Positions 29,692 to 56,432 of a stretch of DNA of 64,000 bases are shown in pieces. The notes under the pieces are model-generated. The model made no database searches and had not been told where the DNA came from. It saw only the letters and a program-made list of their open reading frames with translations. The translations under genes and the position numbers were made by a program. The DNA is from Podarcis liolepis (taxonomy: Eukaryota), in NCBI GenBank assembly GCA_965112155.1, contig OZ218104.1; one strand, written 5' to 3'. Every line of letters begins with the position of its first letter. Within the stretch, counting starts at the first letter, position 1.

Positions 29692-32600
29692 TGTTCTGCT
29701 TTTCCAAAGGATCTAAATAAAATACGTAATCTGAGCCTTGAAAAACACATAGAAGTGAAAGAGGATGTGGGAAAGAGCAACATTCTTCCAACTTCCTCCT
29801 TTAGTGCTATAGCTACACACTTTTCAAGGGGGAGAAAGTAGGACCACCCCCCTCACAAATTCATGGGCAATAAGACAGTGAATGGGGGTGGGTAGGCCAA
29901 AAGCCTTTGTGGACACCCAAGCAAGACCTCAAGGGTGCCATTGTGCTCATGGGTGCCAAGTTACCAACTCTTGGCTTGTGTATGTGTATTATTATATAGA
30001 TTCACATGATATTCCAGTCTGGGGGGAAAGGACAACAATTCCCCCCAACTCTTCTTGCGGAGTAGAAGCTGCCAGGATCCTCTTTTCTTTTTTACAGTAT
30101 TGACTCATCGTTAAGCCTTGGTTTCTTTTTGAAATATCACTGACATGCTTTTGATTGGCTCAAAACACAGTAGCCCAGACTCAGGAGGTCACTAGTAACA
30201 GCCACATCTAAATGTCAGATTTATTTTTCTAAAGGAGGGTGTGCAGTGTTAATAAGGAAATTTTGGGGTCATTCCTGCTGTGGGGGTGGGGGGGCAGGAA
30301 AGAAGGGAGATGCTGTGTTAAAGGATATTATTTCTGCTTGCTCCCCAATGGAGCACCATAATGCAAAAATCATTCCTTCATAGTGTGTTTCTATCTCTAA
30401 CAAAAGAGTCTTAGATAAGGTTTTGTATTCTCATGTGCCTGCTGCTTTTATGATCTCTTCTGCTTCCTCTTAAATGAATGCATATCCTTCCCCATCTACC
30501 CCACCAGTCTCCATCTCCCTTCCCTCCCTCTGTTGCCTCTTCTGTGTCAGAAATGTAGGCTGCAGAGCAGGGACAGGGACAACCTGCGGCTCTCAGGCTC
30601 ATTGCAAAAACGCTCTGCAAGCCATCAGTTCAGGCCTCTGACAAGAGGGATCTGTTCCTCCCCTGGCAGTCTGCTGGGTGGAGAGGGAGAGGAAGCAAGA
30701 AGAGGGGTGTCAGAAAGAGAGAGGAGGGGTGTCAGAAAAAGACGAGGGGGGGGGAGGATGTCAAAAAGACAGAGAGAACAAAGGGTGCCAGAAAGAGACA
30801 GTGGTAGGCAGGGGAGGGGGAGAAGGGGCTGCTGGAGACAGAGAGAGATGGAGAAGAAGGGGTGCCTAAAAGTGAGAGAGAAAATAGGGAGCAGTGGAAA
30901 AAATGGATAGCAAGGAGAGAAAGAAAAGGAGATGTCCATTTTTGACCCTGGCCCCACCCACTGCTGTTATCTGTTTTGCCAACCAACAGTATATAAACCC
31001 TACAGATCACCCTAGGGAAGGAGGCCCTTGCCTTGAGAGAGAGAGAAAAGTTCCTTGCTGCTCCTGCCAATGAATGCCTGGACTCCTCCTGCTCAATATA
31101 TTCCTCACCTATCTGTGCCAATAGGAGGCTGGTCTGCGCCAGCCCTTGTGTATGTAAAGTGCCCCCCCCCCCCAGGGCTGCACTCCAGCAGGAGAGGTTC
31201 TGCTAACTCCAACTATACTAGAGCCATCCCTGAGTGTCTGATGAAATGCGTCTGGCCAGATCTTGGAATCAGGTTTGAAAATGTGTGCGTATTTAAATAT
31301 TAAAATCATGCCGATGCATTATAAGGCATTAATGTTAAGCATCTGGTTGCCAGATTCAGGAACTGCATCTTTCTTCTGAGGCTCCTAAATCTGACAACAT
31401 CCCTAACGGAGAATGTTGAGAGGGAATCCAATTAGGAGAATTTGCTGGTGACTGTTGAGTTGGAAGGACTGGAGCTGTCTGGGGAAATCACCCCAGCTGC
31501 TCTGCGCTGGTTGCCCCTTCCCCCTGCATCCCCCCCCCAATCTACATCCTCCCCACAAAAAGGAGGGAGCCTGCCTACTTCTCTCAACTCCCATCATCTC
31601 AGCTCCTCTCCCAGCTGCCTCCTCCAGCATCCTTCCTGCAGCTGAAGGAAGGGGGCTTGGAGGAGTGGGGGGGGGGCGTGTGGAGATTCTCACAACTGGT
31701 GCTGACTCATATTATGTGAAAGGCGCTCCAGGTCACCGGGCCTGGACTGATGGAAGCTGCGCGTTTGGTACGGGGAATAAACGACTGGCTGCGGATACTC
31801 AAAACAAGAGCTGCCAGGAATCAGGCCAGTCAGAGATGGAAGCCTTTCCATAAATGTGTATGGGGTGGAGTGAGGGGAGGAGGAAGGTAGCAGGGGCCTG
31901 AATGAAATTCACGCTTTATCTCTCCAATATTATTCAGCACCCCTTCCCGCCCCCTGCTAGTGGCAAAGAGAGTTGGGGTAAAAGGGCAAGACACGCATCA
32001 ATCAGCAGCTCAAGCCCTGGGGAGGGTGCTGATTGAGTTTATTCAGCGAAAAGAGGGGGAAAACTCTGCACATGCTCAAGGGCGCTCTTGCGCGAGGCCT
32101 ATAATGAAAAACAAGCAAAGCCCGGCGGGGTCCTGGGCCAACTCGCCTCATCCTGAGCCCCTGTGAAGCACAAGGGGCCCCCAGTTGCGGGTTCCGATGC
32201 TGGCCTGTCTTAGCATCTTCCCAACGGCAGGGCAGCAGCGAGGAGGCGCTTCCCTCCGGCGGCGGAGAAGCAGCCTGCCCGCAGGCTTGCGTGGTCAGGG
32301 GAAACTGGTCAGGGCATCGGGCTGCTGGGCTGCCTTTCCTCGCCTGCTGGGCTCCAGATGTGGCACAGGGACGATACCCTCGAGAGGTGCCACAGCTGGG
32401 GCAGCTGAGAGACCTTCTGCCTGCTTCTAGGAGGGATAGGGAAGAGATCTTTCTCCAGCTTGGAGCAAAGTGGAGAGGGCGCACACTACTTGCCCTGGGC
32501 AAGACCCTTGGAGCTGCTGCCTCCCTCCCGCTCCACGCAAAGCAGCCGGCCAGGCTACTTGCAGCCCCAAGTGCCAAGCAGGCGCCCCGCAAGGCAGCCA

Positions 32601-33219
32601 GCTCCATCGGTCCCTCCAAGCACGCATCACCCCGGAGCATCTTGCAAAGCGGCAATGGACAAACCTGCCCAAACGCGACTTCCCCACCGCGCCCAAGGCA
32701 GCCACACCCTCCCCGGCCCAGAGGTCCAGACTCCACTCCGGGAGCATTCTGGTCACACCCCACTGCGCGCCCCATCCATCCTCCGCGGACACACTCCGCG
32801 GCGCCTCGCCTAAGCTGGGGGCGCGCGGCGGGGATCCCCAATGCGCCCTCCGCCCGAGTCACCACCAACTAAGAGCGATGCCCCCCTAGCCACCGGCCTG
32901 GTGATCCCTATGATTCGCGGCCGGGAACTGGTCAGTCCACTTGGGGACCCTTCCTGGCCAGCGCGGGGAGGGAGAGGATGGCGGCCCCGTCCAATTGCCC
33001 CCTTGGAGCGTCCGAGGCGCCCTTCTGCCCGTCCGGGCAGCTCCTGCGCAGCAGCGCCCGCTGCAGGCGAGACGGTGCCCCTCACCGCGGCATCGGGGCG
33101 GCGGCCCCACTTGCTCCAGCGATCCACCAAGGGAGGGAGCGAGGGCGCCCGCTAGGGCTGCGTCCCCCGTCGCGAGCGGCACACTTACCCGGGGTGGCGG
33201 CCCCTCCCGGCCCCTCCAT
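21065..33219 (-). CDS. DBNDD1: Dysbindin domain-containing protein 1 (164 aa, 4 exons)
   Basis: Exons (minus) 33219-33189 [10 protein letters not shown], 25271-25119 ..[17 protein letters not shown], 24693-24553 [40 protein letters not shown], 21234-21065 ..[24 protein letters not shown]; GT-AG, all phase-1 introns, 495 nt. Confidence 0.93.
21586..21758. mobile_element. Tc1/mariner-type MITE
   Basis: Imperfect TIRs ccgtatttttcgc..ataacac / gtgttatgg..aaaaaatacgg flanked by TA dinucleotides. Confidence 0.7.
21965..22233. mobile_element. Tc1/mariner-type MITE
   Basis: TIRs ta-ccgtatttttccatgtataa / ttatagacggaaaagtacgg-ta. Confidence 0.7.
25990..26016 (+). repeat. (TG)n microsatellite
   Basis: About 13 TG units. 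Confidence 0.9.
26588..26868 (-). mobile_element. tRNA-derived SINE with CR1-like tail, interrupted by a hAT MITE
   Basis: Plus strand shows tagaatcatagaattgtagagttggaagggacc (CR1-like 3' end, antisense) and gggatcgaacc...ctctaaccaactgagata (antisense tRNA head). Confidence 0.65.
26679..26801. mobile_element. hAT MITE nested in the SINE
   Basis: TIRs taaggttaccag / ctggtaacctta and a perfect 8-bp TSD tcctatac (26671-26678, 26802-26809). Confidence 0.85.
29658..29688 (+). repeat. (CA)n microsatellite
   Basis: About 15 CA units. Confidence 0.9.
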
Positions 33220-33850
33220 GCGTCCGGGCTGCTGCAGCCGCTGCGTTCGTGCGCTCCTCCGCCTGACGAGCCGTCGCCGCCTCCGTGCGCGCCGCTCTGG
33301 TCACTGCACCAGCCGCGCCAGCAGCCCGAGCGCTCATCGCCGGGGAGGAGCAGGAGCGGGCCCGGCCGGCCGGTTCGGGCGGGGGGCGAGGCAGGAAGGC
33401 AGGCGCAGCAGAGCAGCGGCGGCCGCGGCAGCCCCCCACCTCGGCCGTCGAGGAGCGCCGCTAGGCACTGGCCGAGGGGAGGGGGCGGGGGCGGGGTGCG
33501 CGGGAGGCGGCCGCGCCAGCGAGCGAGTGGCCCGCCCGCCGCTCCGCACACCACCGGCTCACCCAGCGGGCTGCTGGGCTGACTTGGGCGTTCGGCTCCC
33601 TCCGGAACCTTCCCCGACCGCCTCGCGAAATCGGAGCCCTGGAACGTCGAAAAGGCGAGCGCCCCTGAGCACGTGCAGAGTTCCCGGCGCAATCCGCATC
33701 CCGCTGAAGTCAGGGGAAGGGACCTTCTGGGTGGCAGGCTTGCAGCGGGGCAGCGGGACCCAGGGCCAGGGAGGATCAGAGACAGAGGCCTCCTTCAGAG
33801 AGGCGGGGAGAGGGCGCTGCGCGGCCTTCACTCCTTTCTTGTGAGGACCC
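32050..33850 (-). promoter_or_regulatory. CpG island / promoter of DBNDD1
   Basis: Very GC- and CpG-rich, contains DBNDD1 exon 1 and GC boxes gggggcgggggcgggg at about 33481-33496. Confidence 0.8.
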
Positions 33851-36479
33851 CGGAAGCAACACAGCCCTTAGTCTGACCCAGAACCATAGCCTTGTTTTGA
33901 CATTCTTATGGGGAAGTCTGTTGCTAAGAAGGAAAAACCTCCAGTTTCAGGGACAGTCTACCAGAGCATTTCAGTTGCTGGGTGGGGCAACAGCAGAGGA
34001 GGACTGGGAGTTGTGGGTTTGAGGGTGGAACGAGGATGATGCCTGGTGGGCATCAAACTGAGCACTGCAAGAAATTCATAGTGAATAAGGCTGTCCAGGA
34101 CTGCTGATGATGGCGGCCGTGTACAGAATCAGATGCAGCTGATAGGAGTCACAGGTGGGGAGACAGCTCCTGTTGTACTTATGTTCCACTTCTGGGCTTC
34201 CCATTGGGGCACCTGGCTGGCCACTGTGAGAACAGGATGTGGGAGTAGATGGGCCTTTGGTCTCATCCAGCAAGGCTCCTATTACGAATTTACTGCACCC
34301 CCAATAAATCTTTGGGCTCCCTAGGACAGCACCACTTCTCTGTGTAGACATTAAGAACCGTCTGTCTCCCACCAGGCTCAGTATCCCTGGGGAACCAGCA
34401 AGCCCAGATGGAGATTTGCTTTTCTTTTTTTTCCTGGAAGAGCCACAGAGAAGCTTCTTTCTCATCAGTCGCGCTTTGCACCTCCCATGTCCCCAGCGGG
34501 GAGTGGAGAGAAGCTGGCATCTCTGCCAGCTGAGCTGCACTAGGCTTTTATTCCAGTCTCTGGCTACAAAACCTCCATTTTCTTTATCCCACCCCACTCT
34601 ACTCCATCCCACCCCCAAGCAAGAGCTTCTAAAAACAGATCCAGGCGCGAATCCAAGCAGAAAGCCCCAATTAAGCAATGCCAACAGGAGAAACCCCCTG
34701 GCTGTTGTCTTCCTGGAACAAGGTATCCGTGCAGGACCGAAGCAGAAGGCAGAAGTCTAAACACTGCTCTAGCAGGCTCAGGGTGAAAGCGAATAGTGGG
34801 AATCAATGTGCCATAGGCAATGCAGAGCATCCTAAGCTAGGCAAGTGGGTCCCAATGTTTCCTGGAATCCAGCCTCTGTCAGAAATCCTTTAGTTCCACC
34901 ATAGAATAAATACAAATCAAATAACTCAATAAAATAATGGTTGATTAGTTGGCCCTGCAGGTGCACTCTGCACACTGTCAGAAGTGCTCTCCACATAGCT
35001 GTGTGAAGCAGCAGGCCACCCTTTTTCACTGGTGGGGTCACTTTGCTTGCTTACCCGTTTCCTTCCTTCTCACCACATGAATCTCAAGAAATGTTACTTG
35101 CTTAGGGTCAAGACCAGCCTCCCCCAGCTTGGATCCTCTAGATATTTTGACCTGCAACTCCTGTCAACTCCAGCCAGTGCAGCTGTGCTCCCATCACCCC
35201 CAGCATCCTGCAGCTCTGCTGGCTGGAGGTGATGGGAGCTTTAATCCAGGTTTGGAAAGGTTGGCTAATGCAGGAGCTGCATGTTCCTGGCCTCTCTGGG
35301 GAGGTCCAAGTAGTCCATCCTGTGCACAGTACACAAATAGCTTCTACCATCAGTACCAGAGGGGACAATGCCATGACAGACGACCCCCCCCCCCAGTGGG
35401 CTAGGGGTGCACAGGTGGACAGAGCCTCTTAGCCTGTGCAACCAAGCAATTAGGTAGAGGATGGGGCTTCTGGGTAATTAACACAAGGCCCTTGGGGTCA
35501 AGGCTAAATGTGAGGCCATTGTTTCACCCTTGGAGTTAAAACAAACTTCCAGAGCTCAGCAGGCAAAGCTGAGGAGGCCTGTAATTGGACTCCACCTGCC
35601 TCTCCTCTCATTGCCTCTGCCTAAATCACTCATCATCCTGTTTCCTGGCTCAGACACTTTCTGCTCCTCCTCCTGATTCCCCCTACCACCAGCTTGGTGA
35701 TAGCCCCTCCTAATCTCAGATTGCGACTGAGAAACAGGTTACCTAGTAGTTAAAGAAATGTGCTCTGCACATAACCCAGAGGCATTTTCCTTGTTCTCAG
35801 TGGACATTTTTCTGGGCTGAGCTCCAGCATCCCAGACTCAAATTGATGGTTACTCAAGAGGGTGTGGGGGCATAAGGCAGGGATGAGGAATCTGTGGCCC
35901 TCCAAATGTTTCAGTATTCCAGCTCCCATCAGCCCCAGTCACACATAGTCAGTGGATAAAGGCAACGCAACCAGGAGACAACGCTACCAGGAGGTCCCCT
36001 AGTTCTAAAGCACAGTTGCAGCAAAATTAGCAATGGGCAAATATTTTCAATAAGCATCTGCAAATGGTCCAGGTAATTCCTTGATCTAAACCTCTAATGT
36101 TTTGATACTTGTCCTATTCCTGTCACTGTATTTTGTTGCAATGGACTGTGATTAAAAGCAATAAAAACGACTTGCTTGCTTGCTTGTTTATACATTTATG
36201 CATACTGTGCATCTTCCATGGTGCCTTGTAGGGTTGGACAGGCGGCGAAGGCAGCTTCCCTGCTCCCACAGAGCTCACCACCTGAAACTGCAAGGAAACC
36301 CGCAGAGGTGGCGGCGGCGGTGGGCAGCTGCCCTTACTAGACCTCAATGAATTCTTATTGCTATTGTCGTCGTCGTAGCCAATTGAGTCATAAGCCTTCC
36401 TTGCTTTGCTGCATCACTGGCAAGGTCTGCCTCCACCATTTCCCAGCCCTAGAAGTCCCATAGAGTCCCATAGGGCTTA

Positions 36480-48392: not shown

Positions 48393-49310
48393 CTAGCTTC
48401 CCCTGTAGGTGGTGTAGGAATAGGGGCTGAGCAGCAAGGGGATGTGCACTTTTTCTTCCTCTGTGATGGTGAAGACAATCTAAACAGAGAGACAAGAGGA
48501 TGCATAAAGACAAGGGAGGGGGGAATAGCAGGAGGTTGGTAGTGCTCTTTGGTTTGAGATCCTTTCTTCGCTGCACTGGGCCTAGCCCATGAGAAGACAT
48601 TTGTCAGGGGCCCAAATGCCTGGTCCGGAGCACCCCTAGTGCCCAGTCCTCGCACACTTCTGGCTTTGTGCTCTTTCAGGGATGTCCCATGCACAACATC
48701 TAGCTCTCCTACCAACCACCTGGGCCTCTTCCTGCAGGTTTCTGAGGGACTTCACAGCGTGCAGCCTTCATAATGTGAAGTTTATGCTGATTTCTCCCAT
48801 ATTCCAACGTTGTGCTTCTCCTGCCAGGAAGTACATCCCTCAAAGGGCAGTGAGTGGTGGTCCCTGCCATCATCAGTCCTCCCTATGTTGGAAGGAGCCT
48901 CCCCCCCCTTCCAGGTGTGAGTTTCATCTGGGAACCAAACTTACTTCCACATAAGGGTAGAAGCTGCTGTATCCTTGTTGCTCCCAGTACTCCCTCGTCT
49001 CAAAGCGCAGCTTATAGGTGCCAGGTTTCAGCTCCCTGGGCATCGGGCTGTTTCTGTCCAAGCGCCCATCAGGGTTTGTCTTGCTGGAACGGAATAAATG
49101 AGGCTGAAACTGCAACGGCCCCAGCCCTACCGAGGGAGGGAGATTGTCTCGCTTCATCCCCTCCTACCTCCTCATGAGCTCTGCCCACGGACGTTGGGGG
49201 TCCTCCAGCTTAGAGAAGTGCATGGCCAGGCCTTGGGCAGGGAGGCCGGTGAGCACGTTCAGTGCGTGGACAGTCAGGAAAGCGTGGTGGACCTCATCGG
49301 AACTAGCCAC
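48393..49310 (-). CDS. URAH: 5-hydroxyisourate hydrolase (transthyretin-related) coding exons
   Basis: [47 protein letters not shown] / [39 protein letters not shown] / [28 protein letters not shown]; the HIUase C-terminal YRGS signature is present; position next to GAS8 matches the mammalian URAH/URAHP locus. Confidence 0.93.
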
Positions 49311-52300
49311 CTGGGATTCAGAACGGAGAGCCGGGTGGAGCAAAAGCCTCTGTATGAGTTCCTCCCCCTCCCAGTTTCCTAGGTCCATCGATTCCCAAAG
49401 GAAGATGTCCTTGCCACCTTCAGCAGCAGGCCCTTATTTTCCAAGCTCTTTCTTGCTGCCCTCAGCAGTTTTTCCTGTTTTTAAATGTTTGCTTTTTCTC
49501 CCAGGTGCTGTGTGCACGGGAGCTTTCTGTGAAGTGTTGTGGTTGTGGAGAGAGAGGGAGGACCCCACCCCACCCACTTCTCACCCATCCACCAGCTGTG
49601 TGTTCAAATACAAACTCTGCTGGCTCCTGGGTGAGAGGTTTTGTTGGGGGGGGGGTTAAAGACAAGATGCCCTCGGCAGACCCTGCTTGCTTGCTTGCTG
49701 CTGTCCACATTGCCCATTCATTTGCCCAAATTGTAGCCCTGCAGCTTGACATAGTGCCTGCCACTGTTTGTACAGAGAGGGCAGGTGAGCAAGTAATGAA
49801 GGTGCAGAGGAGGTTCAGGGGCAGTGAAGGTCAGCAGTGGTCCCCACTGGCTGTGTCAGGATGGGCCTGGGCAGGTGCCTTACAACGCCAGCCTCTTGAG
49901 AGAAGCCCTGCCTGACAAGTGCGTTCCTCTGCTCTTAAGCACGGCAGAGCAGTACTCCTGGGTTTCAAACAGAGGTCCTTCCTAGCCCTATCTGGAGATG
50001 TTGGGGATGAACCTAAGAACACTGAGTTATGACCCCTCTCCACCCAGAAGGTGGGACTGAACAGTGGCAGCTCTCCTTCCTGCTCCATGTATTATTTCAC
50101 TGCCTTCTTAAACATTTGATCCCTGGCCACAGAGTTCCTTTACTTTTGGCCCATGCCAGGAAACTCCCCAAGACAATCAAGAGTGTGGCATTCAAGCTTC
50201 TTGTTTTTCTTGAGCTGCCAGAAATATAGATTCCCACCCCCTTGCCAAGTTTCCCAATGAAACACCAAAGCAGGAAGGCTTTCCCTTCTCTTGGGCTGAG
50301 CCCACCCACCATCCTAGGATCTCTCACCACCTGGGGTCTCCCTCCTCCGTCCCTCTGTGGTAGTTGGTTTCTCTCATCCATTCTGGGGCATTTCTGATGC
50401 AGCCCCTTCTAACTCCACTTCCTTCTTGCCTTCCACTGGCAGGCTGCCTGCCTGTCATGACTCAGCAGAAAGTCTTAACCCTTTTGGTGCCACGAGGGCA
50501 GGCTCAACCGGGTGCCCCCTGAAAACATGAGAAAGGGGCCCAATTCATTTCAGGGCAAGGGGGGAGGGTTCCATCTCCATCTCTACTCAGCCTAATCTGT
50601 AAAATATGCATTTGAAGTTCTTGGGACTTCTCACTGGAGTAAAATGCAGCAAGCATTTTGTGGGAGAATAGTCAATACTGTCATGCCTCAGCAAGAGCAA
50701 AAATGAAGATATAGGAGCAGTCACATGGTTACCCGGGAGTATTTGTGAGTTCCCAGTCCTTACTTGGATCACTGCTGTTGCTGTAGTGCTAAGACCTTCT
50801 CCTAAGCAGTCTGTAGCCTGCAGGATCAGAGTGTATTGGGGGGTTACCTGTAAACAAATAATTCCATTAGCATTTGGGCAAAGGGGATCAAAGCACCACA
50901 TGGCAAAGCAGTGTTGTATAAGATCCTGAGAGCCCCACTGGCCAAGTAACTTGAGGAAACTTTAAACTCACTAGGGTACTTCCAGATACAGCAAACTGAA
51001 ATGGGACACAGCTGTTATTCTAGACCAGGCACAGGCAAACTCGGCCCTCCAGATGTTTTGGGACTACAGTTCCCATCATCCCTGACCACTGGTCCTGCTA
51101 GCTAGGGATCATGGGAGTTGTAGACCAAAAACATCTGGAGGGCCAAGTTTGCCTATGCCTGTGGTAGACCACCCTTAATATTAGGAAAATGTGAAAAGAA
51201 AATGCTTAATTCTTGCAAACCATACCATTAAAGCACATGACTTCCCCCAAAGGATTTGGGCAAATGTAGTTTGCCCCTCACAGAGCTACAATTCCCAGCA
51301 CCCTTGACAAACTGCAGTTCCTAGGATTCTTTGGAGGAAGCCATGTGCTTTAAATGTGTACAGCTTATGTCCACTTCATCTTCTGTAGGGCAGCCCTCCA
51401 GATATTGGAAGGCGGCAGTCATGCTGTTCATCTGCTCCAGACTCAAAGCCTTCCCTCTTCTCTTTCAGAAATCCCTTGCAAGCCCCTCCCCATCCTGCTT
51501 GGTCCCCCCCCCCCCAGCTAGCCTCTAATCCACCAGTGCCTTATGGCCCAGTGTTTCCACTAGGAGTAAAGCACAGCAGCAGAGCCAAGGGTTGCCTCAA
51601 AGGGGAAATTTAGCATCATTAATCATGCCCTCTCCCTACACAGCCAAGACCCAGCCACTTACCGTTCTGTCAAGTCCTGGTTTGTTCAAGCTGATGACCC
51701 CTGTTTTATTATCGATGGCAAACATTTGGCTCTGTGGCTTTGTGGGGGTCTGGATAGCGAGGGAGTAGGTGATTACCCCATTGTAGGAATTCACAGCATC
51801 ATCCATGTCAGTGGCTGATACTTGTGTCACAAAGGTACCTGGGTGCGTGTGCCACAAAAGTCCAAAGTTCAGCTTCTGAAGTGCATCACACACATACCCG
51901 CAACATAGCCAGATCATCCCAGCTTGGAGGTCAAATTGACTCTGCCCCAGACAGCTCCAAAATTACCTCTTAGCCTCTGCAAACTGTGCAGCAGCTGGGT
52001 GCGATCTGCACTGCCTTTATGCCAGTCCGCAAGTTATGGTGGGCTCAGTAGTGACTGCCCAGGCCATACAGGTAGAAAGAAGCACAGTTAGGGGCCTGGG
52101 GTTTGCACACAATATTATACCCCCTCCCCCTGTGGGTTCTCCTTCCATAAAGAATGGGCAAAGGATATGGGCATTCAGAGGCAAATATTAGGGGTTTCCA
52201 TACAGTCAGTTCGTTCATGCATGTGCAACCAGACAGACAGACACGTACCTGGTGGGGCTCCTTCTGCTACGGAACCATGGAAGATGCTCTGGGTAAAACG

Positions 52301-54553
52301 GGGCTTGTTGTCATTCTGATCAAGCACCTTGATGACGATCTCTGTGCGGTTCCCCACAGGCTGCCCAGTTGCACTTACAGCGTGAAGAAAGAGCTGCAGA
52401 GCAAGCAGGGTAGCAATTGAGACACTCCCCAAAGCTGCCTCTCACCCTCCCAGACACCTTCCCACAAGAGTGTAGAGCTGCCCTTCTCTTCACACCGAGA
52501 GCACCCAGGAATTTACATTAGGGGCTAAAAAGTATTTAGATACTGTATGCTGAGAATTCAAAAATGAAACTAAGCTGAACTTTCTCCTCCTTCCCATAAA
52601 TAATGGTTGCTAATACTATTGCTTCCCGGGGATTCCCCAAAAGCTGACATAAAGCAGCAGCAAACATGTGATTTCCACTCTTTCCCTGCCCCATAACACG
52701 TAGCAGCCTTCCTCAACCTGGTGCTCTCCAGCAGTTTTGAACTGCGAGTCCCATCAGCTCCAGCCAGCACAGCTATATGATGCTTGGGCTGATGGCAGCA
52801 GTAGTCCAAAGGATCTGGAAGGCACCAGGTTGGCAAAGGCAGTTTTAAGAGGTGCTGGGAGGTTCCAGGGTGGCAGAAGCTAGCACAAAGGGACTTACAA
52901 TGTATTTGTCTTTGGTCTCTCTGTCCAATGGCATGGTCACCATCAGCCAGCCTGTCTCTCTTTCAAGGATGAAGATGCCTTGAGGAGGTCTGTCTGCACC
53001 AGTCCCAGTGACACTGTAGAAAGTCATGCCATCTTTACCTACCTGGTAGCAAATGAACGTGTCAAAACTGAGAAGGTCTGTTTTCTTGTTGCCTCCCTCT
53101 ATGCCTCCCTCAGAGGTAGAACACAGAGAGGGATTCTGAGCAGGTTCATAGGAGGAAAAGAAGTCCTCCAAGCATAGTGGTTCTGAGCTGTTCAAGGCAC
53201 ATGAAGAGAAAGAGGCAGTTGCCCTCTCTGTCTATACCTGCAGCAGACGCTTGGGGTAGGGACCGATGCCATTCTCCATGACCAATATTGGAGGCAGAAG
53301 TTGCAAATCCCTTTTCTGCCTCTTCAGATCAAGTCTGGATTCTGGAAAGGTCAGCACTTCTGCCCAAGCAAATAGGAATGAGACCTGCAAGGGGGAAAGA
53401 GAGTTGCATTATTTTTTTAAAAAAACCCTCATTCAGAGCCCAATCCCATGGCATCTTCTATGTGAAGACAAGTTTGGCACTCCTTAAGATTTGTAGGGAT
53501 CTCAGGACAGGACAGTGCTGGACCTCAGAATTCCATCCTGGAACATGTGAAGGAAGACACGTCCTGGAATCTGGACACACCTCTATGTCAAGAGTATCTT
53601 CCTTCTATCTTAAATGTCAGTATTGGGTTTGCATGCTTGTTATTTACCTGAAGTCCTTTCACTTCATCTATGGACCTGCCACAGGTAGCAACCAGTCTGT
53701 TTTGCAGCCTCTATTGAGCAGTAGTCAAGGGTAGAGCTGATAAAGGGGAGATGGGCCAAGAGGCCTTGCCACGGCTCCCACACCCATGGCCAACATCTTG
53801 TTGACCCCTTGGGCTAGCCTTATTTGTGTTATCTGATCCCTCTCCAAGGCTAGATGCTTTGCAGCCCATGGAAGATTCAAGGTCCCTGTTTACAGTTTAA
53901 AGGTTGGTGCTCCCTAGTGGTTGTTTTTAAAGGAAATGCATGTTTGCTGATTCAACATTAGTTTGGAACATTGGCAACTGCTCTTATCTTCTCGAAACCT
54001 ATTTGCTTTGAACAACTATGCTGCCAGTAGAGTACAGTGTAGAGAGACACAAGCCCAATATTATGAAACCTTCCTCAGCCCAGTAACATTCCCATGCTCA
54101 CTCGGTGGTCACATCTCCCCCACACTCTGTTCATGCTCCTCTTCATCTTTATCCTCACACCCCAGCTCTTCCACAAGGCCATGGCAACACAGCTGGGGGA
54201 CAGCACCTGTACTTTGCATGCAGGAATTCCCAGATTCAAACCCAGCCGCTGCCATCCTGAAGGATTTCTGGTTTCAGCAGCACAGCAAAATCACTGCCTG
54301 GAGCCTTGGGGAATTGCTACTAATAAACACTAGTTGGACGAAGAGCCTGGCCTGGTGTGATAAAGTTGGTTCATGTGTTGGTACCTCTTCTGCACCTACA
54401 AAACACTTAACCCAGCCCCTCCACCATTAATGCCAAGAAGATCCTTCTACAACACCAAAGATACTTGCCCCTCTTCGCTTGCTCTTTGGAGGACAATCCT
54501 ACCTGAGAGTGAAGAACCAGGAAGAGCAGGAGGCTGACCCTAAAGAAGCACAT
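48393..54553 (-). CDS. Predicted chimeric secreted protein: cadherin signal peptide + mini-propeptide + EC1-EC2 fused to 5-hydroxyisourate hydrolase (371 aa, 9 exons)
   Basis: Exons (minus) 54553-54503, 53384-53238, 53042-52899, 52393-52249, 51838-51663, 50847-50764, 49310-49168, 49083-48945, 48479-48393; all GT-AG, phases 0,0,0,1,0,0,2,0; 1116 nt with no internal stop. The junction 50764->49310 (caa|gtaagg ... cccag|gtggct) is inferred, not observed in RNA. Confidence 0.72.
50764..54553 (-). CDS. Truncated type I (CDH1-like) cadherin module: signal peptide, short propeptide, EC1, EC2
   Basis: [17 protein letters not shown] | [49 protein letters not shown] | [36 protein letters not shown].. 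| [22 protein letters not shown].. | [18 protein letters not shown] | [28 protein letters not shown]; the 145-nt and 176-nt exons match CDH1 exons 6 and 7; HAV motif present; no EC3-5, TM or cytoplasmic exons seen downstream. Confidence 0.88.
51026..51161. mobile_element. hAT-type palindromic MITE
   Basis: TIRs caggcacaggcaaact / agtttgcctatgcctg, internal inverted repeat, imperfect 8-bp TSD ttctagac/tggtagac. Confidence 0.75.
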
Positions 54554-56432
54554 TGTCCTGCTTCAGCTCTTGCTCCTTGCCTTCTGCAAAACTCTGGCAA
54601 AGGGATGGCAACCCAGGTAACTTAAGCTAGAGCAAAGTCTGCCTGGCAAGTCCCTTTGGGGGAAGGGTTAAGGGCAAATTGGCAAGCCTGGGGTATTTTG
54701 ACACACCACATGGAAGCAGGCCACAGTTGATTCAGCATGTGGGACCAAGTGAAGGGCGTGTGCTTGTGCCCTAGGAACATCTCTTGCAGGTGGCACTGCC
54801 CTCCATTGTGCAAGTCTCATTTATTCTGGCAGGGTAAGGGTTCATTTGGGAGCAGGTATTCTCAGGACTCAAGCCTCTGAAGCTCTTTCGAATATCAGAG
54901 CTCAGTTTTATGGCCTTTTGCCCTTTGTTTTGATTCAGAGCAGAAATTTGCAATAAAACATGGAGCGGAGGAGGGTGTTGTTATGAAAACAGAGGAAGCC
55001 ATTTTCCTTGTGCAGAAACAGAGGAGGGGCTGCCCAGTCCCCCTTTCACAGTAGCAGGAGAGTGCCATGCCTAGTCCTGACCTCATGGCAGACATAGCTT
55101 CCTCAGAAGGCAAACCAGGTGCCCCACAGGTTGAGGGCCTTGAGGAGCAGGCAGAGGCTCCTGGAACAAGTGATGAGGAGGGCCCCTGGTGAGATACCTG
55201 CTGAAGAACCCTTGGAGCCGTCAGAAGAGGTGAAAGTGCCCCCTGCCCCGCCCCGGTCCTCAAGAGCACCGGTGCCAAAAGCTTTTGGTCCAGATTGAAG
55301 AGCAACGATACAGCTTGCCTTTATAGAACCAGAGCCCCCAGTCTACCTGTGAATGTGAAAGCCTTGATGCTCCTTCACTGCCAGCATTTGTGGTTAGAGA
55401 GTGGTTTAGGAGGCCAGAGTATATAAGACCCCTCTCCTGCCCTTTGAGCCTTTCAGTCGCCAGAAATAACACAGATCTCTGGCTCCTTGTTCCTGGCTTT
55501 GGCGCCCCCACCCCCCTGAACTCTCTGTGTGATCGACTGTGGACCATTTCCTGACTTTGCTTCTACATCACATGTTGGACCTAGACAGATTCTGTCTGCT
55601 GGACCTATGGAACTCTGCCCTCTTGGCTAAGTGTCTTGGTAAAGGCTTTTTACCCTCCTGTGACCGAGACCCTAGCCCTGGAGGAAGGTGCTCTCCTGGA
55701 ACATGAGAAAGTGCTGCAAGAGTAAGTAGAAGGAGGCAGACACTCACACATGAGCACCACTGTATTATATCGAAAGACCAACCAGGATCTGGTCCCCATT
55801 TGTCTTGACGTTGTCTTTAAATCCCCATAGCAGAGATTTCTCCATGAAGTTGTTAACAGCAAGCTGATGTGCAGATAGCAGCAGCAGAGGTTTTCCACAT
55901 TGGTGCACAAAGAACGGCTGCCCACCATTCAACCTCTGAACGAGGTTTGTTGCTTTATATTATAAACTGGTTTCAAGCTAACATGGTTGGCAGAAGCATT
56001 GCACTTGGCCACCACAAGAGGGCACTGTGAGTATACAGAAAGGTTTCAGCCTCTACTTATTCACCCACTTCGACCACCAGAGTGGTATTTAAGTAAAAGA
56101 CCCCAGACTGAGTGATCTGGTGGAAGCACTTCTCCAGGCCAATGCAAAACAGGTAAGGTATTATTATTATTCCTGTCATCTTAATTTTAAATAGTAATGG
56201 AATAAAGAAGAAGAATTGAAAGAAAGGCAGGGTGTAAGTGTAATAAAGATTAAATTGTTGTTATTATTTATTGATCCTACAATTTTCTCCACATTTTTAT
56301 GAAGATTTTGGAAGGAGCAGTCCTTTCTCTTATGCTTATAAATTAAGAGGCATGAAAGGAAAGAGGAAGTAGAAGAACAAGCAAAATTCCAAATCATTTA
56401 CTTCGGTTTTGCTGGCCAAGTGGCCATAGGAT

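Follow-up and report, generated by a model that had tools for sequence, protein, structure and literature searches.

A two-start locus of Podarcis joins cadherin EC1-EC2 exons to the HIU hydrolase gene URAH in an arrangement shared by squamates, turtles and birds

The HIU hydrolase (HIUase) encoded by URAH is the textbook case of an enzyme giving rise to a secreted protein, transthyretin, which originated when the whole gene was duplicated, no longer has the catalytic residues or the C-terminal YRGS, and binds thyroid hormone. In fish, URAH is peroxisomal and carries a PTS2 signal. The first two extracellular domains of the cadherins, EC1-EC2, are the textbook adhesive unit. Transthyretin is a secreted homotetramer, made in the liver in vertebrates (PMC4324301). 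Natural N-terminal fusions on a tetrameric HIUase core are known from the Urad-Urah allantoin synthases (PMC13751858), and in sauropsids, which lack URAD and liver uricase, Urah is still highly expressed in the liver (PMC10517255).

Here we describe a locus of Podarcis liolepis at which cadherin and URAH exons lie in one gene. The window, that is, the whole stretch of DNA that was analysed, is 64,000 nucleotides long, and the fusion gene consists of nine minus-strand exons between 54553 and 48393 that sum to 1116 nt. Read exon by exon, every intron is bounded by GT..AG and the phases match throughout. The reading frame was checked through these exon phases; the whole-protein analyses were done on a public protein, P0030, whose exon borders are identical to those of the window. 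In transcript order, with an optional cassette exon and an alternative URAH first exon (U0) included, the features are as follows.

54503..54553, minus strand: E1, 51 nt; start codon at 54553, 17-residue hydrophobic putative signal-peptide exon with a phase-0 end
53648..53710, minus strand: optional cassette exon between E1 and E2, 63 nt, 21 residues, phase 0
53238..53384, minus strand: E2, 147 nt; propeptide remnant, RQKR furin-type site, start of EC1
52899..53042, minus strand: E3, 144 nt; EC1 core with LDRE calcium motif (Pfam Cadherin, E 5e-7)
52249..52393, minus strand: E4, 145 nt; end of EC1 (HAV), DQNDN calcium linker, start of EC2
51663..51838, minus strand: E5, 176 nt; EC2 (Pfam Cadherin, E 5e-8)
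50764..50847, minus strand: E6, 84 nt; last EC2 strands, a shortened cadherin exon whose GTAAGG is the fusion donor
50328..50440 (about), minus strand: U0, alternative URAH first exon; ATG at 50381, 18 codons, phase 0
49168..49310, minus strand: U1, 143 nt; first shared HIUase exon, with the first catalytic His
48945..49083, minus strand: U2, 139 nt; HIUase exon with the DGR arginine (Pfam E 4e-10)
48393..48479, minus strand: U3, 87 nt including the stop; second His and C-terminal YRGS (Pfam E 5e-10)

Searched singly, E3, E5 and E6 matched the Pfam Cadherin family and U1-U3 the HIUase/Transthyretin family. E1 matches residues 1-17 of P0030 at 100% identity, with a helix at residues 3-15 of the AlphaFold model, and E4 likewise shows 100% identity. 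By comparison with Zootoca cadherin-1, the counterpart of E2 is the cadherin exon that closes the prodomain; the mature N-terminus that it encodes reads DLQLLPP instead of DWVIPP, and only about 25 residues lie between the signal peptide and RQKR. The EC2 domains of cadherin-3 and cadherin-1 are the nearest solved sequences to E5 (E 4e-16), and EP-cadherin, cadherin-1 and cadherin-3 are the best solved matches of the cadherin part as a whole. EC1-EC2, of the E-/P-/B-cadherin type, shares 55-63% identity with type I cadherins and contains HAV as well as the LDRE/DQNDN/DxD calcium motifs. After a linker of ~10 residues follows a complete HIUase domain (positions 1-109 of 109 in the PF00576 profile, E 5e-34, residues 261-370 of P0030), with the catalytic His, Arg, His and the terminal YRGS found in the window as well as in P0030. 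The HIUase exons are nearest to zebrafish HIUase (solved 2h1x among the best matches), and U2 on its own is matched by solved HIUases.

In P0030 Pfam thus recovers two Cadherin domains and one HIUase domain, with no match to the cadherin prodomain (PF08758) or cytoplasmic domain (PF01049), both of which are matched in the full-length Podarcis cadherin-1 (P0131). A tblastn search with a full-length lizard cadherin-1 as query found no EC3-EC5, transmembrane or cytoplasmic exons in the 64 kb, and a GC-rich island at 32-34 kb held no convincing ORF. An earlier note on this DNA had proposed nine same-strand exons with GT-AG introns, encoding 371 aa and lacking these downstream cadherin parts; the exon reading and the tblastn search agree with it, as do the joints described below, and the cadherin-plus-HIUase architecture for which it had suggested searching was recovered by Pfam and recurs in squamates, turtles and birds.

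Sequencing runs X1, X5, X7 and X23 were compared with positions 48560-54559, a stretch that excludes U3. Run X1 is presumed to be RNA, as its spliced contigs argue. These contigs carry all eight predicted joints, with ends reading CT..AC, which is GT..AG on the minus strand. Six joints occur in both X1 and X7: E1-E2 (53382->54501), E2-E3 (53039->53235, which leaves E2 spliced on both sides), E3-E4 (52393->52899), E4-E5 (51834->52245), E5-E6 (50843->51659) and U1-U2 (49083->49168). The fusion joint, 50764->49310, for which the earlier note had proposed a search for spanning reads, was found in X1 alone among the four runs (one study). There it appears as 49308->50762 (cut +2, that is, 49310|50764) on a contig with a mean depth of 1069.5, which leads from E6 across U1 and U2 to U3, the start of U3 being read at the loose end of the contig at 48945. 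Over the cadherin exons the mean depth in X1 is ~530-830. The raw reads of X23 gave an exon depth of about 1 and no countable joints; near the cassette exon there were a few X23 reads only. The cassette is intact in the window at 53710-53648, with AG/GT flanks, and is the additional exon of isoform X1 of Podarcis muralis (P0072, 392 aa).

The joined contig holds just 28-30 letters of E6, slightly under the 31-letter bridging rule, and some long public models (605-974 aa) are plainly merged or messy, as might be expected if a genome mis-assembly or a de Bruijn-graph chimera had been copied into annotation. We give such an artefact next to no credence. Consecutive 31-letter words of the X1 contig cross the fusion joint, and its break falls at the expected fork between spliced and unspliced forms. 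The joint lies exactly at GT..AG, with 2 shared letters, too few for a graph chimera at a word length of 31; many species, assembled independently by different projects, show the same arrangement and junction, and the window is without any N.

A different reading would divide the locus into two products: a short secreted EC1-EC2 protein made by read-through of the E6 donor to a stop ~47 codons on, and URAH made from U0 only, with E6->U1 a minor by-product. An ORF at 50587-50901 does pass the E6 donor to a stop, unspliced E6/intron contigs are present (depth 28.5 in X1, 3.8 in X7), and in X7 a single contig spans E1 to E6 while the U0-U3 contig is separate. This division is nevertheless very improbable in our judgement, given that the spliced X1 contig stands at 1069.5 against 28.5 for the unspliced one, that the minus strand between E6 and U1 contains neither AATAAA nor ATTAAA (the lack of a canonical hexamer had been pointed out before), and that in dozens of species the gene models terminate with the HIUase domain. 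Since its stop codon lies in the last exon, the fusion mRNA is no obvious target of nonsense-mediated decay.

The same locus also yields URAH without the cadherin exons. U0 sits within the 1.45-kb gap between E6 and U1, with a GTGAGA donor after 50328, and the phase-0 acceptor of U1 serves both E6 and U0. The U0->U1 joint, 49307->50325 (cut +3), was found in X5 (depth 21.4) and X7 (depth 15.9) and is not present in the X1 contigs; X5 holds almost exclusively the stand-alone form. A start in U0 gives a 140-aa HIUase without a signal peptide, which, unlike the fusion isoform, is of the size of a small stand-alone HIUase. Its U0-encoded residues match the N-terminal residues of isoform X2 in Lacerta agilis (P0075) and resemble those of Pogona isoform X2 (P0026). 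The locus therefore has two starts, both of which use the HIUase exons U1-U3, and by way of U0 URAH is independent of the cadherin exons. The earlier note had seen no PTS2-type URAH first exon; inspection by eye likewise found no PTS2 motif in U0 or upstream of U1, but URAH does have a first exon of its own, with RNA support in X5 and X7.

Two other starts were considered and set aside. The in-frame ATG that immediately precedes U1, at 49388 (ORF 49164-49388; the 148-aa Ensembl P. muralis model P0077), was rejected as the main start because X1 depth is 28.5 upstream of 49310 compared with about 1070 on U1, and because X5 and X7 splice U1 to U0. The 140-aa Ensembl P. muralis model P0018 (exon 50095-50030) has no supporting joint in X1, X5, X7 or X23.

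Models of 371 aa exist in three further Podarcis species, P. lilfordi (CAI5782301.1), P. muralis (XP_028595730) and P. raffonei (XP_053255873.1), and agree with the window at 98-100% in their exons. Models of 365-400 aa in which the parts follow one another in this order were found in snakes, geckos, Elgaria, Hemicordylus and Rhineura, in pleurodire and cryptodire turtles (for example, Chrysemys picta XP_005308254.1) and in many birds (for example, Columba livia XP_005504889.1). In an alignment of 15 species, the domain order and the position of the junction are common to the species compared. The fusion gene is thus old, common to squamates, turtles and birds, and no lizard novelty.

Among other lacertids, the Lacerta agilis models omit E2-E5 and the Zootoca models splice other cadherin exons onto the U1 acceptor. 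A sturgeon model hints at possibly older lineages. All these public models are automated predictions, not experiments. They bear the label 'cadherin-1-like' or, in UniProt, 'hydroxyisourate hydrolase', so that the suspicion that automated annotation might already model the fusion was well founded in the three Podarcis species; the names are misleading, and the models come without function, isoform logic or evolutionary account. The earlier note had been aware of no description of the fusion, and our full-text literature search found none either.

Within the 15-species alignment, His264, His355, Tyr368 and Gly370 of the HIUase domain are invariant; the variants seen are DGH and YKGS in turtles and YRGN in geckos, Elgaria and Rhineura. 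Conservation of the catalytic residues could, however, stem merely from exon sharing with the stand-alone isoform. In the cadherin part the calcium motifs are mostly kept; D106/R107 in the first LDRE and the core DQND are invariant. Trp2, Lys14 and Glu89 are missing in Podarcis, and at the Glu89-equivalent position the three congeners have G, E or R; the fusion proteins of most other species retain DWVIPP and VEDPME. Classical homophilic binding is unlikely in Podarcis, because these strand-swap determinants have been lost.

Four copies of residues 250-371 were modelled as an HIUase homotetramer, which scored 0.92 compared with 0.00 for the best of 3 controls, a result that may reflect the model's memory of solved HIUase and transthyretin tetramers. 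In the calibration of this score, 21 of 30 solved homo-pairs attained the mark, compared with 0 of 23 solved single chains. The runs of the tetramer model agreed fully (100%) in their contacts, and partner pLDDT was at least 84.

The cadherin modules of the fusions do not form one clade (AU p 9e-95), and a single origin of the module read straight from the tree was accordingly rejected. Because of this, a single origin is argued from the shared exon architecture, with conversion afterwards. In most species the module nearly equals the full-length cadherin of that same species, which points to gene conversion between the two. As to origin, the module looks like a partial tandem copy of a neighbouring full-length cadherin that is still exchanging sequence, not a one-off shuffle. 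The earlier proposal that exon shuffling had built a new multidomain protein thus holds for the in-frame EC1-EC2/URAH splice, seen at the level of RNA and ORF; the origin appears instead to lie in the partial tandem copy with exchange, and the arrangement, being shared by squamates, turtles and birds, is old.

The Podarcis module sits on a very long branch (0.95) and is strongly diverged. Between Podarcis congeners, 9-10 of 207 residues are changed in the cadherin half, most numerously in E4, and 1 of 122 in the HIUase half, which makes the module about five times faster. Relaxed constraint in lacertids would fit the long branch, the fast change and the skipping of E2-E5 in Lacerta agilis as well. 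These same observations, together with the lost Trp2, Lys14 and Glu89, the promiscuous acceptor of the Zootoca models and the existence of a stand-alone isoform with its own first exon (X5, X7; P0075), could be taken to mean that the fusion is conjoined or read-through transcription with no selected protein function: a decaying truncated cadherin duplicate would splice by chance into the URAH acceptor, and the stand-alone HIUase alone would matter, at least in lacertids. We consider this unlikely, though it is the most serious of the alternatives. Both in the window and in three Podarcis species, the 249 codons of the cadherin side are undamaged and so are all their splice sites, the fusion is far dominant in X1, with depths from hundreds to about a thousand, the intact-frame architecture has been kept in squamates, turtles and birds, and the EC-domain core and much of the calcium motifs are conserved.

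We therefore favour, as the probable explanation, a two-start transcription unit that makes a 371-residue chimera and a 140-residue HIUase and that would have arisen and would act as follows. A partial tandem copy of a cadherin gene, comprising the signal exon together with the exons from the end of the prodomain up to and including EC2, would have landed upstream of URAH and captured its phase-0 acceptor, and in many lineages it would then have kept exchanging sequence with the parent gene. The chimera would enter the secretory pathway and be cleaved after RQKR, and its HIUase domain would assemble it into a tetramer bearing four EC1-EC2 arms. We infer that a secreted, furin-processed, HIUase-tetramerised product with four such arms is likely. 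In animals whose urate is very high, it might be retained at epithelia that bear cadherins and hydrolyse HIU outside the cell; or, in soluble form, it might offer classical cadherins a multivalent ligand or decoy. Bolder, and decidedly tentative, is the idea that squamates, turtles and birds, and possibly older lineages, share a functional secreted HIUase tetramer with four arms of the E-/B-cadherin type. It would modulate classical cadherin adhesion as a multivalent ligand, or else clear, at epithelia with cadherins, the 5-hydroxyisourate that arises from the very high urate of uricotelic animals. On this idea the chimera would also be a main reason why URAH survived in a clade without URAD and liver uricase, and the HIUase fold would have been exported a second time, independently of transthyretin.

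A conserved, well-expressed HIUase-cadherin gene of reptiles and birds has been hidden under the label 'cadherin-1-like', and expression studies of 'URAH' or 'CDH1' in these animals may be counting the chimera; the high liver expression of URAH (PMC10517255) may be a case of this. If the protein is real, it would offer a testable reason for the retention of URAH in uricotelic animals, which have otherwise lost or relocated the urate-degrading pathway. It would also be a natural case in which adhesion domains are mounted on an enzyme tetramer as their scaffold, and one in which a single exon set serves an intracellular enzyme and a secreted chimera whose added module is kept parent-like by gene conversion.

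Compared with the described systems, the fusion resembles transthyretin in being an HIUase-fold protein with an acquired signal peptide, here a predicted one. Unlike transthyretin, it shares its HIUase exons with the enzyme isoform and keeps His, Arg, His and YRGS, and its predicted export would use borrowed cadherin exons that add two adhesion domains. Judged by sequence, its HIUase domain is of the HIUase type and not of the transthyretin type, because YRGS and the catalytic residues are retained. With the Urad-Urah fusions of plants, diatoms and bacteria it has in common another domain placed N-terminal to HIUase, which there forms a tetrameric core (PMC13751858); those proteins, however, are intracellular and have the enzyme of the next pathway step as partner, whereas the partner in the chimera is an adhesion module of extracellular type. 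Like the classical type I cadherins, the fusion has extracellular cadherin repeats, calcium motifs and a furin-type RQKR site before EC1, and like T-cadherin and shed soluble E-cadherin it is without the transmembrane and catenin-binding parts. It differs from the type I cadherins in having two EC domains only, no prodomain, no membrane anchor and, at its C-terminus, an enzyme domain.

The chimeric gene that an earlier note proposed on the minus strand at 54553-48393 is real, and that reading was essentially right with respect to exons, domains, RNA joints and public models. Six cadherin-derived exons (E1-E6) and three HIUase exons (U1-U3) sum to 1116 nt, encoding a fusion protein of 371 aa, and an exon-by-exon check of lengths, splice sites and phases confirmed that all introns are GT..AG and that the phases are compatible. 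The locus also has an alternative URAH first exon (U0) and a cassette exon.

Features of the cadherin-URAH locus
E1, 54553-54503, minus strand, 51 nt
Cassette exon, 53710-53648, minus strand, 63 nt, intact, phase 0, between E1 and E2
E2, 53384-53238, minus strand, 147 nt
E3, 53042-52899, minus strand, 144 nt, Pfam cadherin repeat
E4, 52393-52249, minus strand, 145 nt
E5, 51838-51663, minus strand, 176 nt, Pfam cadherin repeat
E6, 50847-50764, minus strand, 84 nt, Pfam cadherin repeat
U0, ~50440-50328, minus strand, within the 1.45-kb E6-U1 gap; ATG at 50381, 18 codons, GT donor after 50328, phase 0
U1, 49310-49168, minus strand, 143 nt, Pfam HIUase/transthyretin family
U2, 49083-48945, minus strand, 139 nt, Pfam HIUase/transthyretin family
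U3, 48479-48393, minus strand, 87 nt, Pfam HIUase/transthyretin family

The Pfam assignments bear out the proposed cadherin plus transthyretin-family architecture; among solved structures, the nearest sequence matches were EC2 of cadherin-3 and cadherin-1 for E5 and HIUases (e.g. zebrafish 2h1x) for U2. Also as claimed, tblastn over all 64 kb with full-length lizard cadherin-1 as the query matched no cadherin exons other than E2-E6, and the E6-U1 interval has neither AATAAA nor ATTAAA on the minus strand. The exons had been described accurately, but U0, which lies inside the gap, had been overlooked. An additional in-frame ATG lies at 49388, immediately upstream of U1. The cassette exon translates identically to the 21 additional residues in isoform X1 of Podarcis muralis (P0072, 392 aa), and it may be what is left of a prodomain exon. 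Elsewhere in the window, 32000-34000 is a GC-rich island (GC 0.68), probably the CpG island at the promoter of a gene nearby, in which the ORFs are GC-biased and spurious.

RNA contigs (runs X1, X5 and X7) and raw reads (X23) were placed on 48560-54559. Contigs of X1 contain the joints E1-E2, E2-E3, E3-E4, E4-E5, E5-E6, E6-U1 and U1-U2, all bounded by CT..AC, i.e. GT..AG on the minus strand, and a loose end at 48945 continues into the start of U3. Mean contig depth on the cadherin side was 530-830, and the contig E6 -> U1 -> U2 -> U3, which contains the predicted fusion splice 50764->49310, had a depth of 1069.5, as against 28.5 for the unspliced contig over the gap. The joined contig covers just 28-30 letters of E6, ending where the spliced and unspliced forms have their last 30 letters in common; the unspliced contig ends there too (50791), and this break is the behaviour of word-graph assembly at a real fork. 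With only two letters common to both sides of the E6-U1 joint, the contig cannot credibly be explained as a graph chimera. No U0 joint was found in the X1 contigs; those of X5 and X7 instead splice U0 to the U1 acceptor (depths 21.4 and 15.9), and one X7 contig runs from E1 into E6 (depth 15). Both isoforms therefore exist, in proportions that vary among samples: the locus has two starts and common HIUase exons, and the fusion mRNA can dominate. The X23 reads cover E6, U1 and U2 at a depth of ~1, too few for joint listing; their first mates lie on the plus strand, which in most stranded libraries means minus-strand RNA. Most X23 reads are drawn to a SINE-like repeat in the E5-E6 intron (50960-51160; a related piece lies near 52750-52830), where RNA-contig depth is 5,000-130,000 and which gives rise to false joints, such as 52773->51109 "going back".

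Queried with the U1 exon, a set of 1.84 billion representative proteins yielded several long sequences with a C-terminal HIUase part and cadherin domains, labelled "cadherin-1-like", "B-cadherin-like" or "hydroxyisourate hydrolase", from Zootoca, Gekko, Erythrolamprus, Chrysemys and others. As had been guessed, automated annotation already models the fusion: a region-restricted search recovered P0030 (CAI5782301.1, Podarcis lilfordi, 371 aa), with twins in P. muralis and P. raffonei, and the window exons have the same borders as P0030 and match it at 98-100%, which identifies the window as Podarcis DNA, closest to P. lilfordi. Models of 365-400 aa combining cadherin and HIUase occur in squamates (snakes, geckos, Elgaria, Hemicordylus, Rhineura), pleurodire and cryptodire turtles, and many bird orders; none were seen from crocodilians, tuatara, amphibians or mammals in these searches, which cannot establish absence. 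The chimera is an old gene common to squamates, turtles and birds. Alignment of 15 species revealed a common plan of signal peptide, short "VLTFPE..RQKR" remnant, EC1, EC2, short linker and HIUase, with the junction just past the last EC2 strand ("AVIxV"); some lineages retain a full cadherin exon, including the DxNDN motif, ahead of the junction. U1 begins in phase 0, and E1, E2, E3, E6 and U0 all finish in that phase, which keeps the stand-alone and intermediate isoform models in frame: U0->U1 (140 aa), E1->U1 (139 aa) and E1->E6->U1 (167 aa) in Lacerta agilis, a U0-like form (142 aa) and one that splices a signal-like exon to U1 (178 aa) in Pogona, and E2->U1 in Heteronotia.

Longer models of 605-728 aa (P0001 and P0019, Zootoca vivipara; P0009 and P0047, colubrid snakes; P0051 and P0060, ducks) splice EC3, EC4 or further exons of the adjoining full-length cadherin to the same URAH acceptor; they represent genuine read-through isoforms or else predictions that were merged. 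A messy sturgeon model (P0126, Acipenser sinensis, 974 aa, flagged UNVERIFIED_CONTAM) has EC2 directly before a divergent HIUase/transthyretin-like domain that does not have the first-strand His; it hints that the junction may predate sauropsids, or may have arisen twice, or it may be a merged model.

In the Zootoca models, the EC3 or EC4 exons spliced to U1 are those of true cadherin-1, which places a full-length cadherin gene upstream on the same strand; on chicken chromosome 11, URAH is recorded as adjoining a gene called CDH1, beside DBNDD1 (PMC6339939, PMC7667380). In a maximum-likelihood tree of the EC1-EC2 segments of 18 fusion proteins and 22 full-length cadherins, the fusion modules did not form one clade (forced monophyly costs 510 log-likelihood units, AU p 9e-95) and grouped with the full-length cadherin of their own species. 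Over 211 positions, module and same-species cadherin differ at 3 residues in Elgaria, 5 in Hemicordylus, 10 in Dermochelys, 12 in Carettochelys, 19 in Eublepharis, 39 in snakes, 69 in Rhineura and 81 in Podarcis. Because all of them share the unusual exon architecture, this pattern suggests one ancient partial duplication, after which the adjoining parent gene repeatedly converted the copy; the alternative is independent re-duplication. In Lacertoidea, snakes and Neoaves, such conversion appears to have stopped.

In classical cadherins, as established by E-cadherin structures, strand swapping and X-dimer formation are determined by the Trp2-containing DWVIPP, a basic residue 14 and the Glu89 region. 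Most species retain DWVIPP, basic residue 14 and VEDPME around Glu89. Podarcis has DLQLLPP and Ile at position 14, and the Glu89 equivalent (residue 128 of P0030; E4, 52249-52393) is Gly, Glu or Arg across three species; in P. lilfordi, the residues GNRT here form an N-glycosylation sequon where the Trp2 pocket used to be. Between Podarcis species, 9-10 of 207 cadherin residues differ, as against 1 of 122 in the HIUase, a pattern that would fit relaxed constraint or, alternatively, a switch of binding partner. The main rival reading is non-functional conjoined transcription of a decaying cadherin copy, at least in lacertids; it is the less likely one, given intact reading frames in three Podarcis species, clade-wide conservation of the fusion and its very high expression in X1.

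The HIUase part has both histidines, the DGR arginine and YRGS; in some squamates the C-terminus is YRGN. In emydid and geoemydid turtle fusions (P0014, P0022), the arginine is replaced by His (DGH) and the C-terminus is YKGS, so turtle HIUase activity may have been lost or changed. The AlphaFold model of P0030 (15-sequence alignment; mean pLDDT 72.8, pTM 0.37) comprises an N-terminal helix (3-15), a disordered stretch (14-43) and three folded beta domains. As a predicted four-copy assembly, residues 250-371 of P0030 scored 0.92 vs 0.00 for the best of 3 controls, with 100% of contacts agreed between runs and pLDDT of at least 84, a pass that may reflect model memory of solved HIUase/transthyretin tetramers; in calibration, 21 of 30 solved homo-pairs reached this mark and none of 23 single chains did.

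Consistent with the earlier note, which was aware of no published description, our full-text search found none of a cadherin-HIUase fusion, subscription journals being mostly outside its scope; the only fusions taken up in an October 2026 review of uric-acid enzyme evolution are Urah-Urad ones. The chimera, although modelled by annotation pipelines, has apparently never been studied, and it touches on both chimeric genes and export of the HIUase fold. In sauropsids, URAD is missing, uricase has moved to the skin and Urah is still high in liver (Mori et al., PMC10517255, in which the word cadherin is absent); a secreted chimera made in liver would fit this unexplained retention, a proposal of ours and not of that paper. 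The fusion product would be secreted and cleaved after RQKR, and its HIUase domain would tetramerise it, arranging four EC1-EC2 arms around an enzyme core. N-terminal additions to the HIUase tetramer do occur naturally, the Urad-Urah allantoin synthases being an example (PMC13751858).
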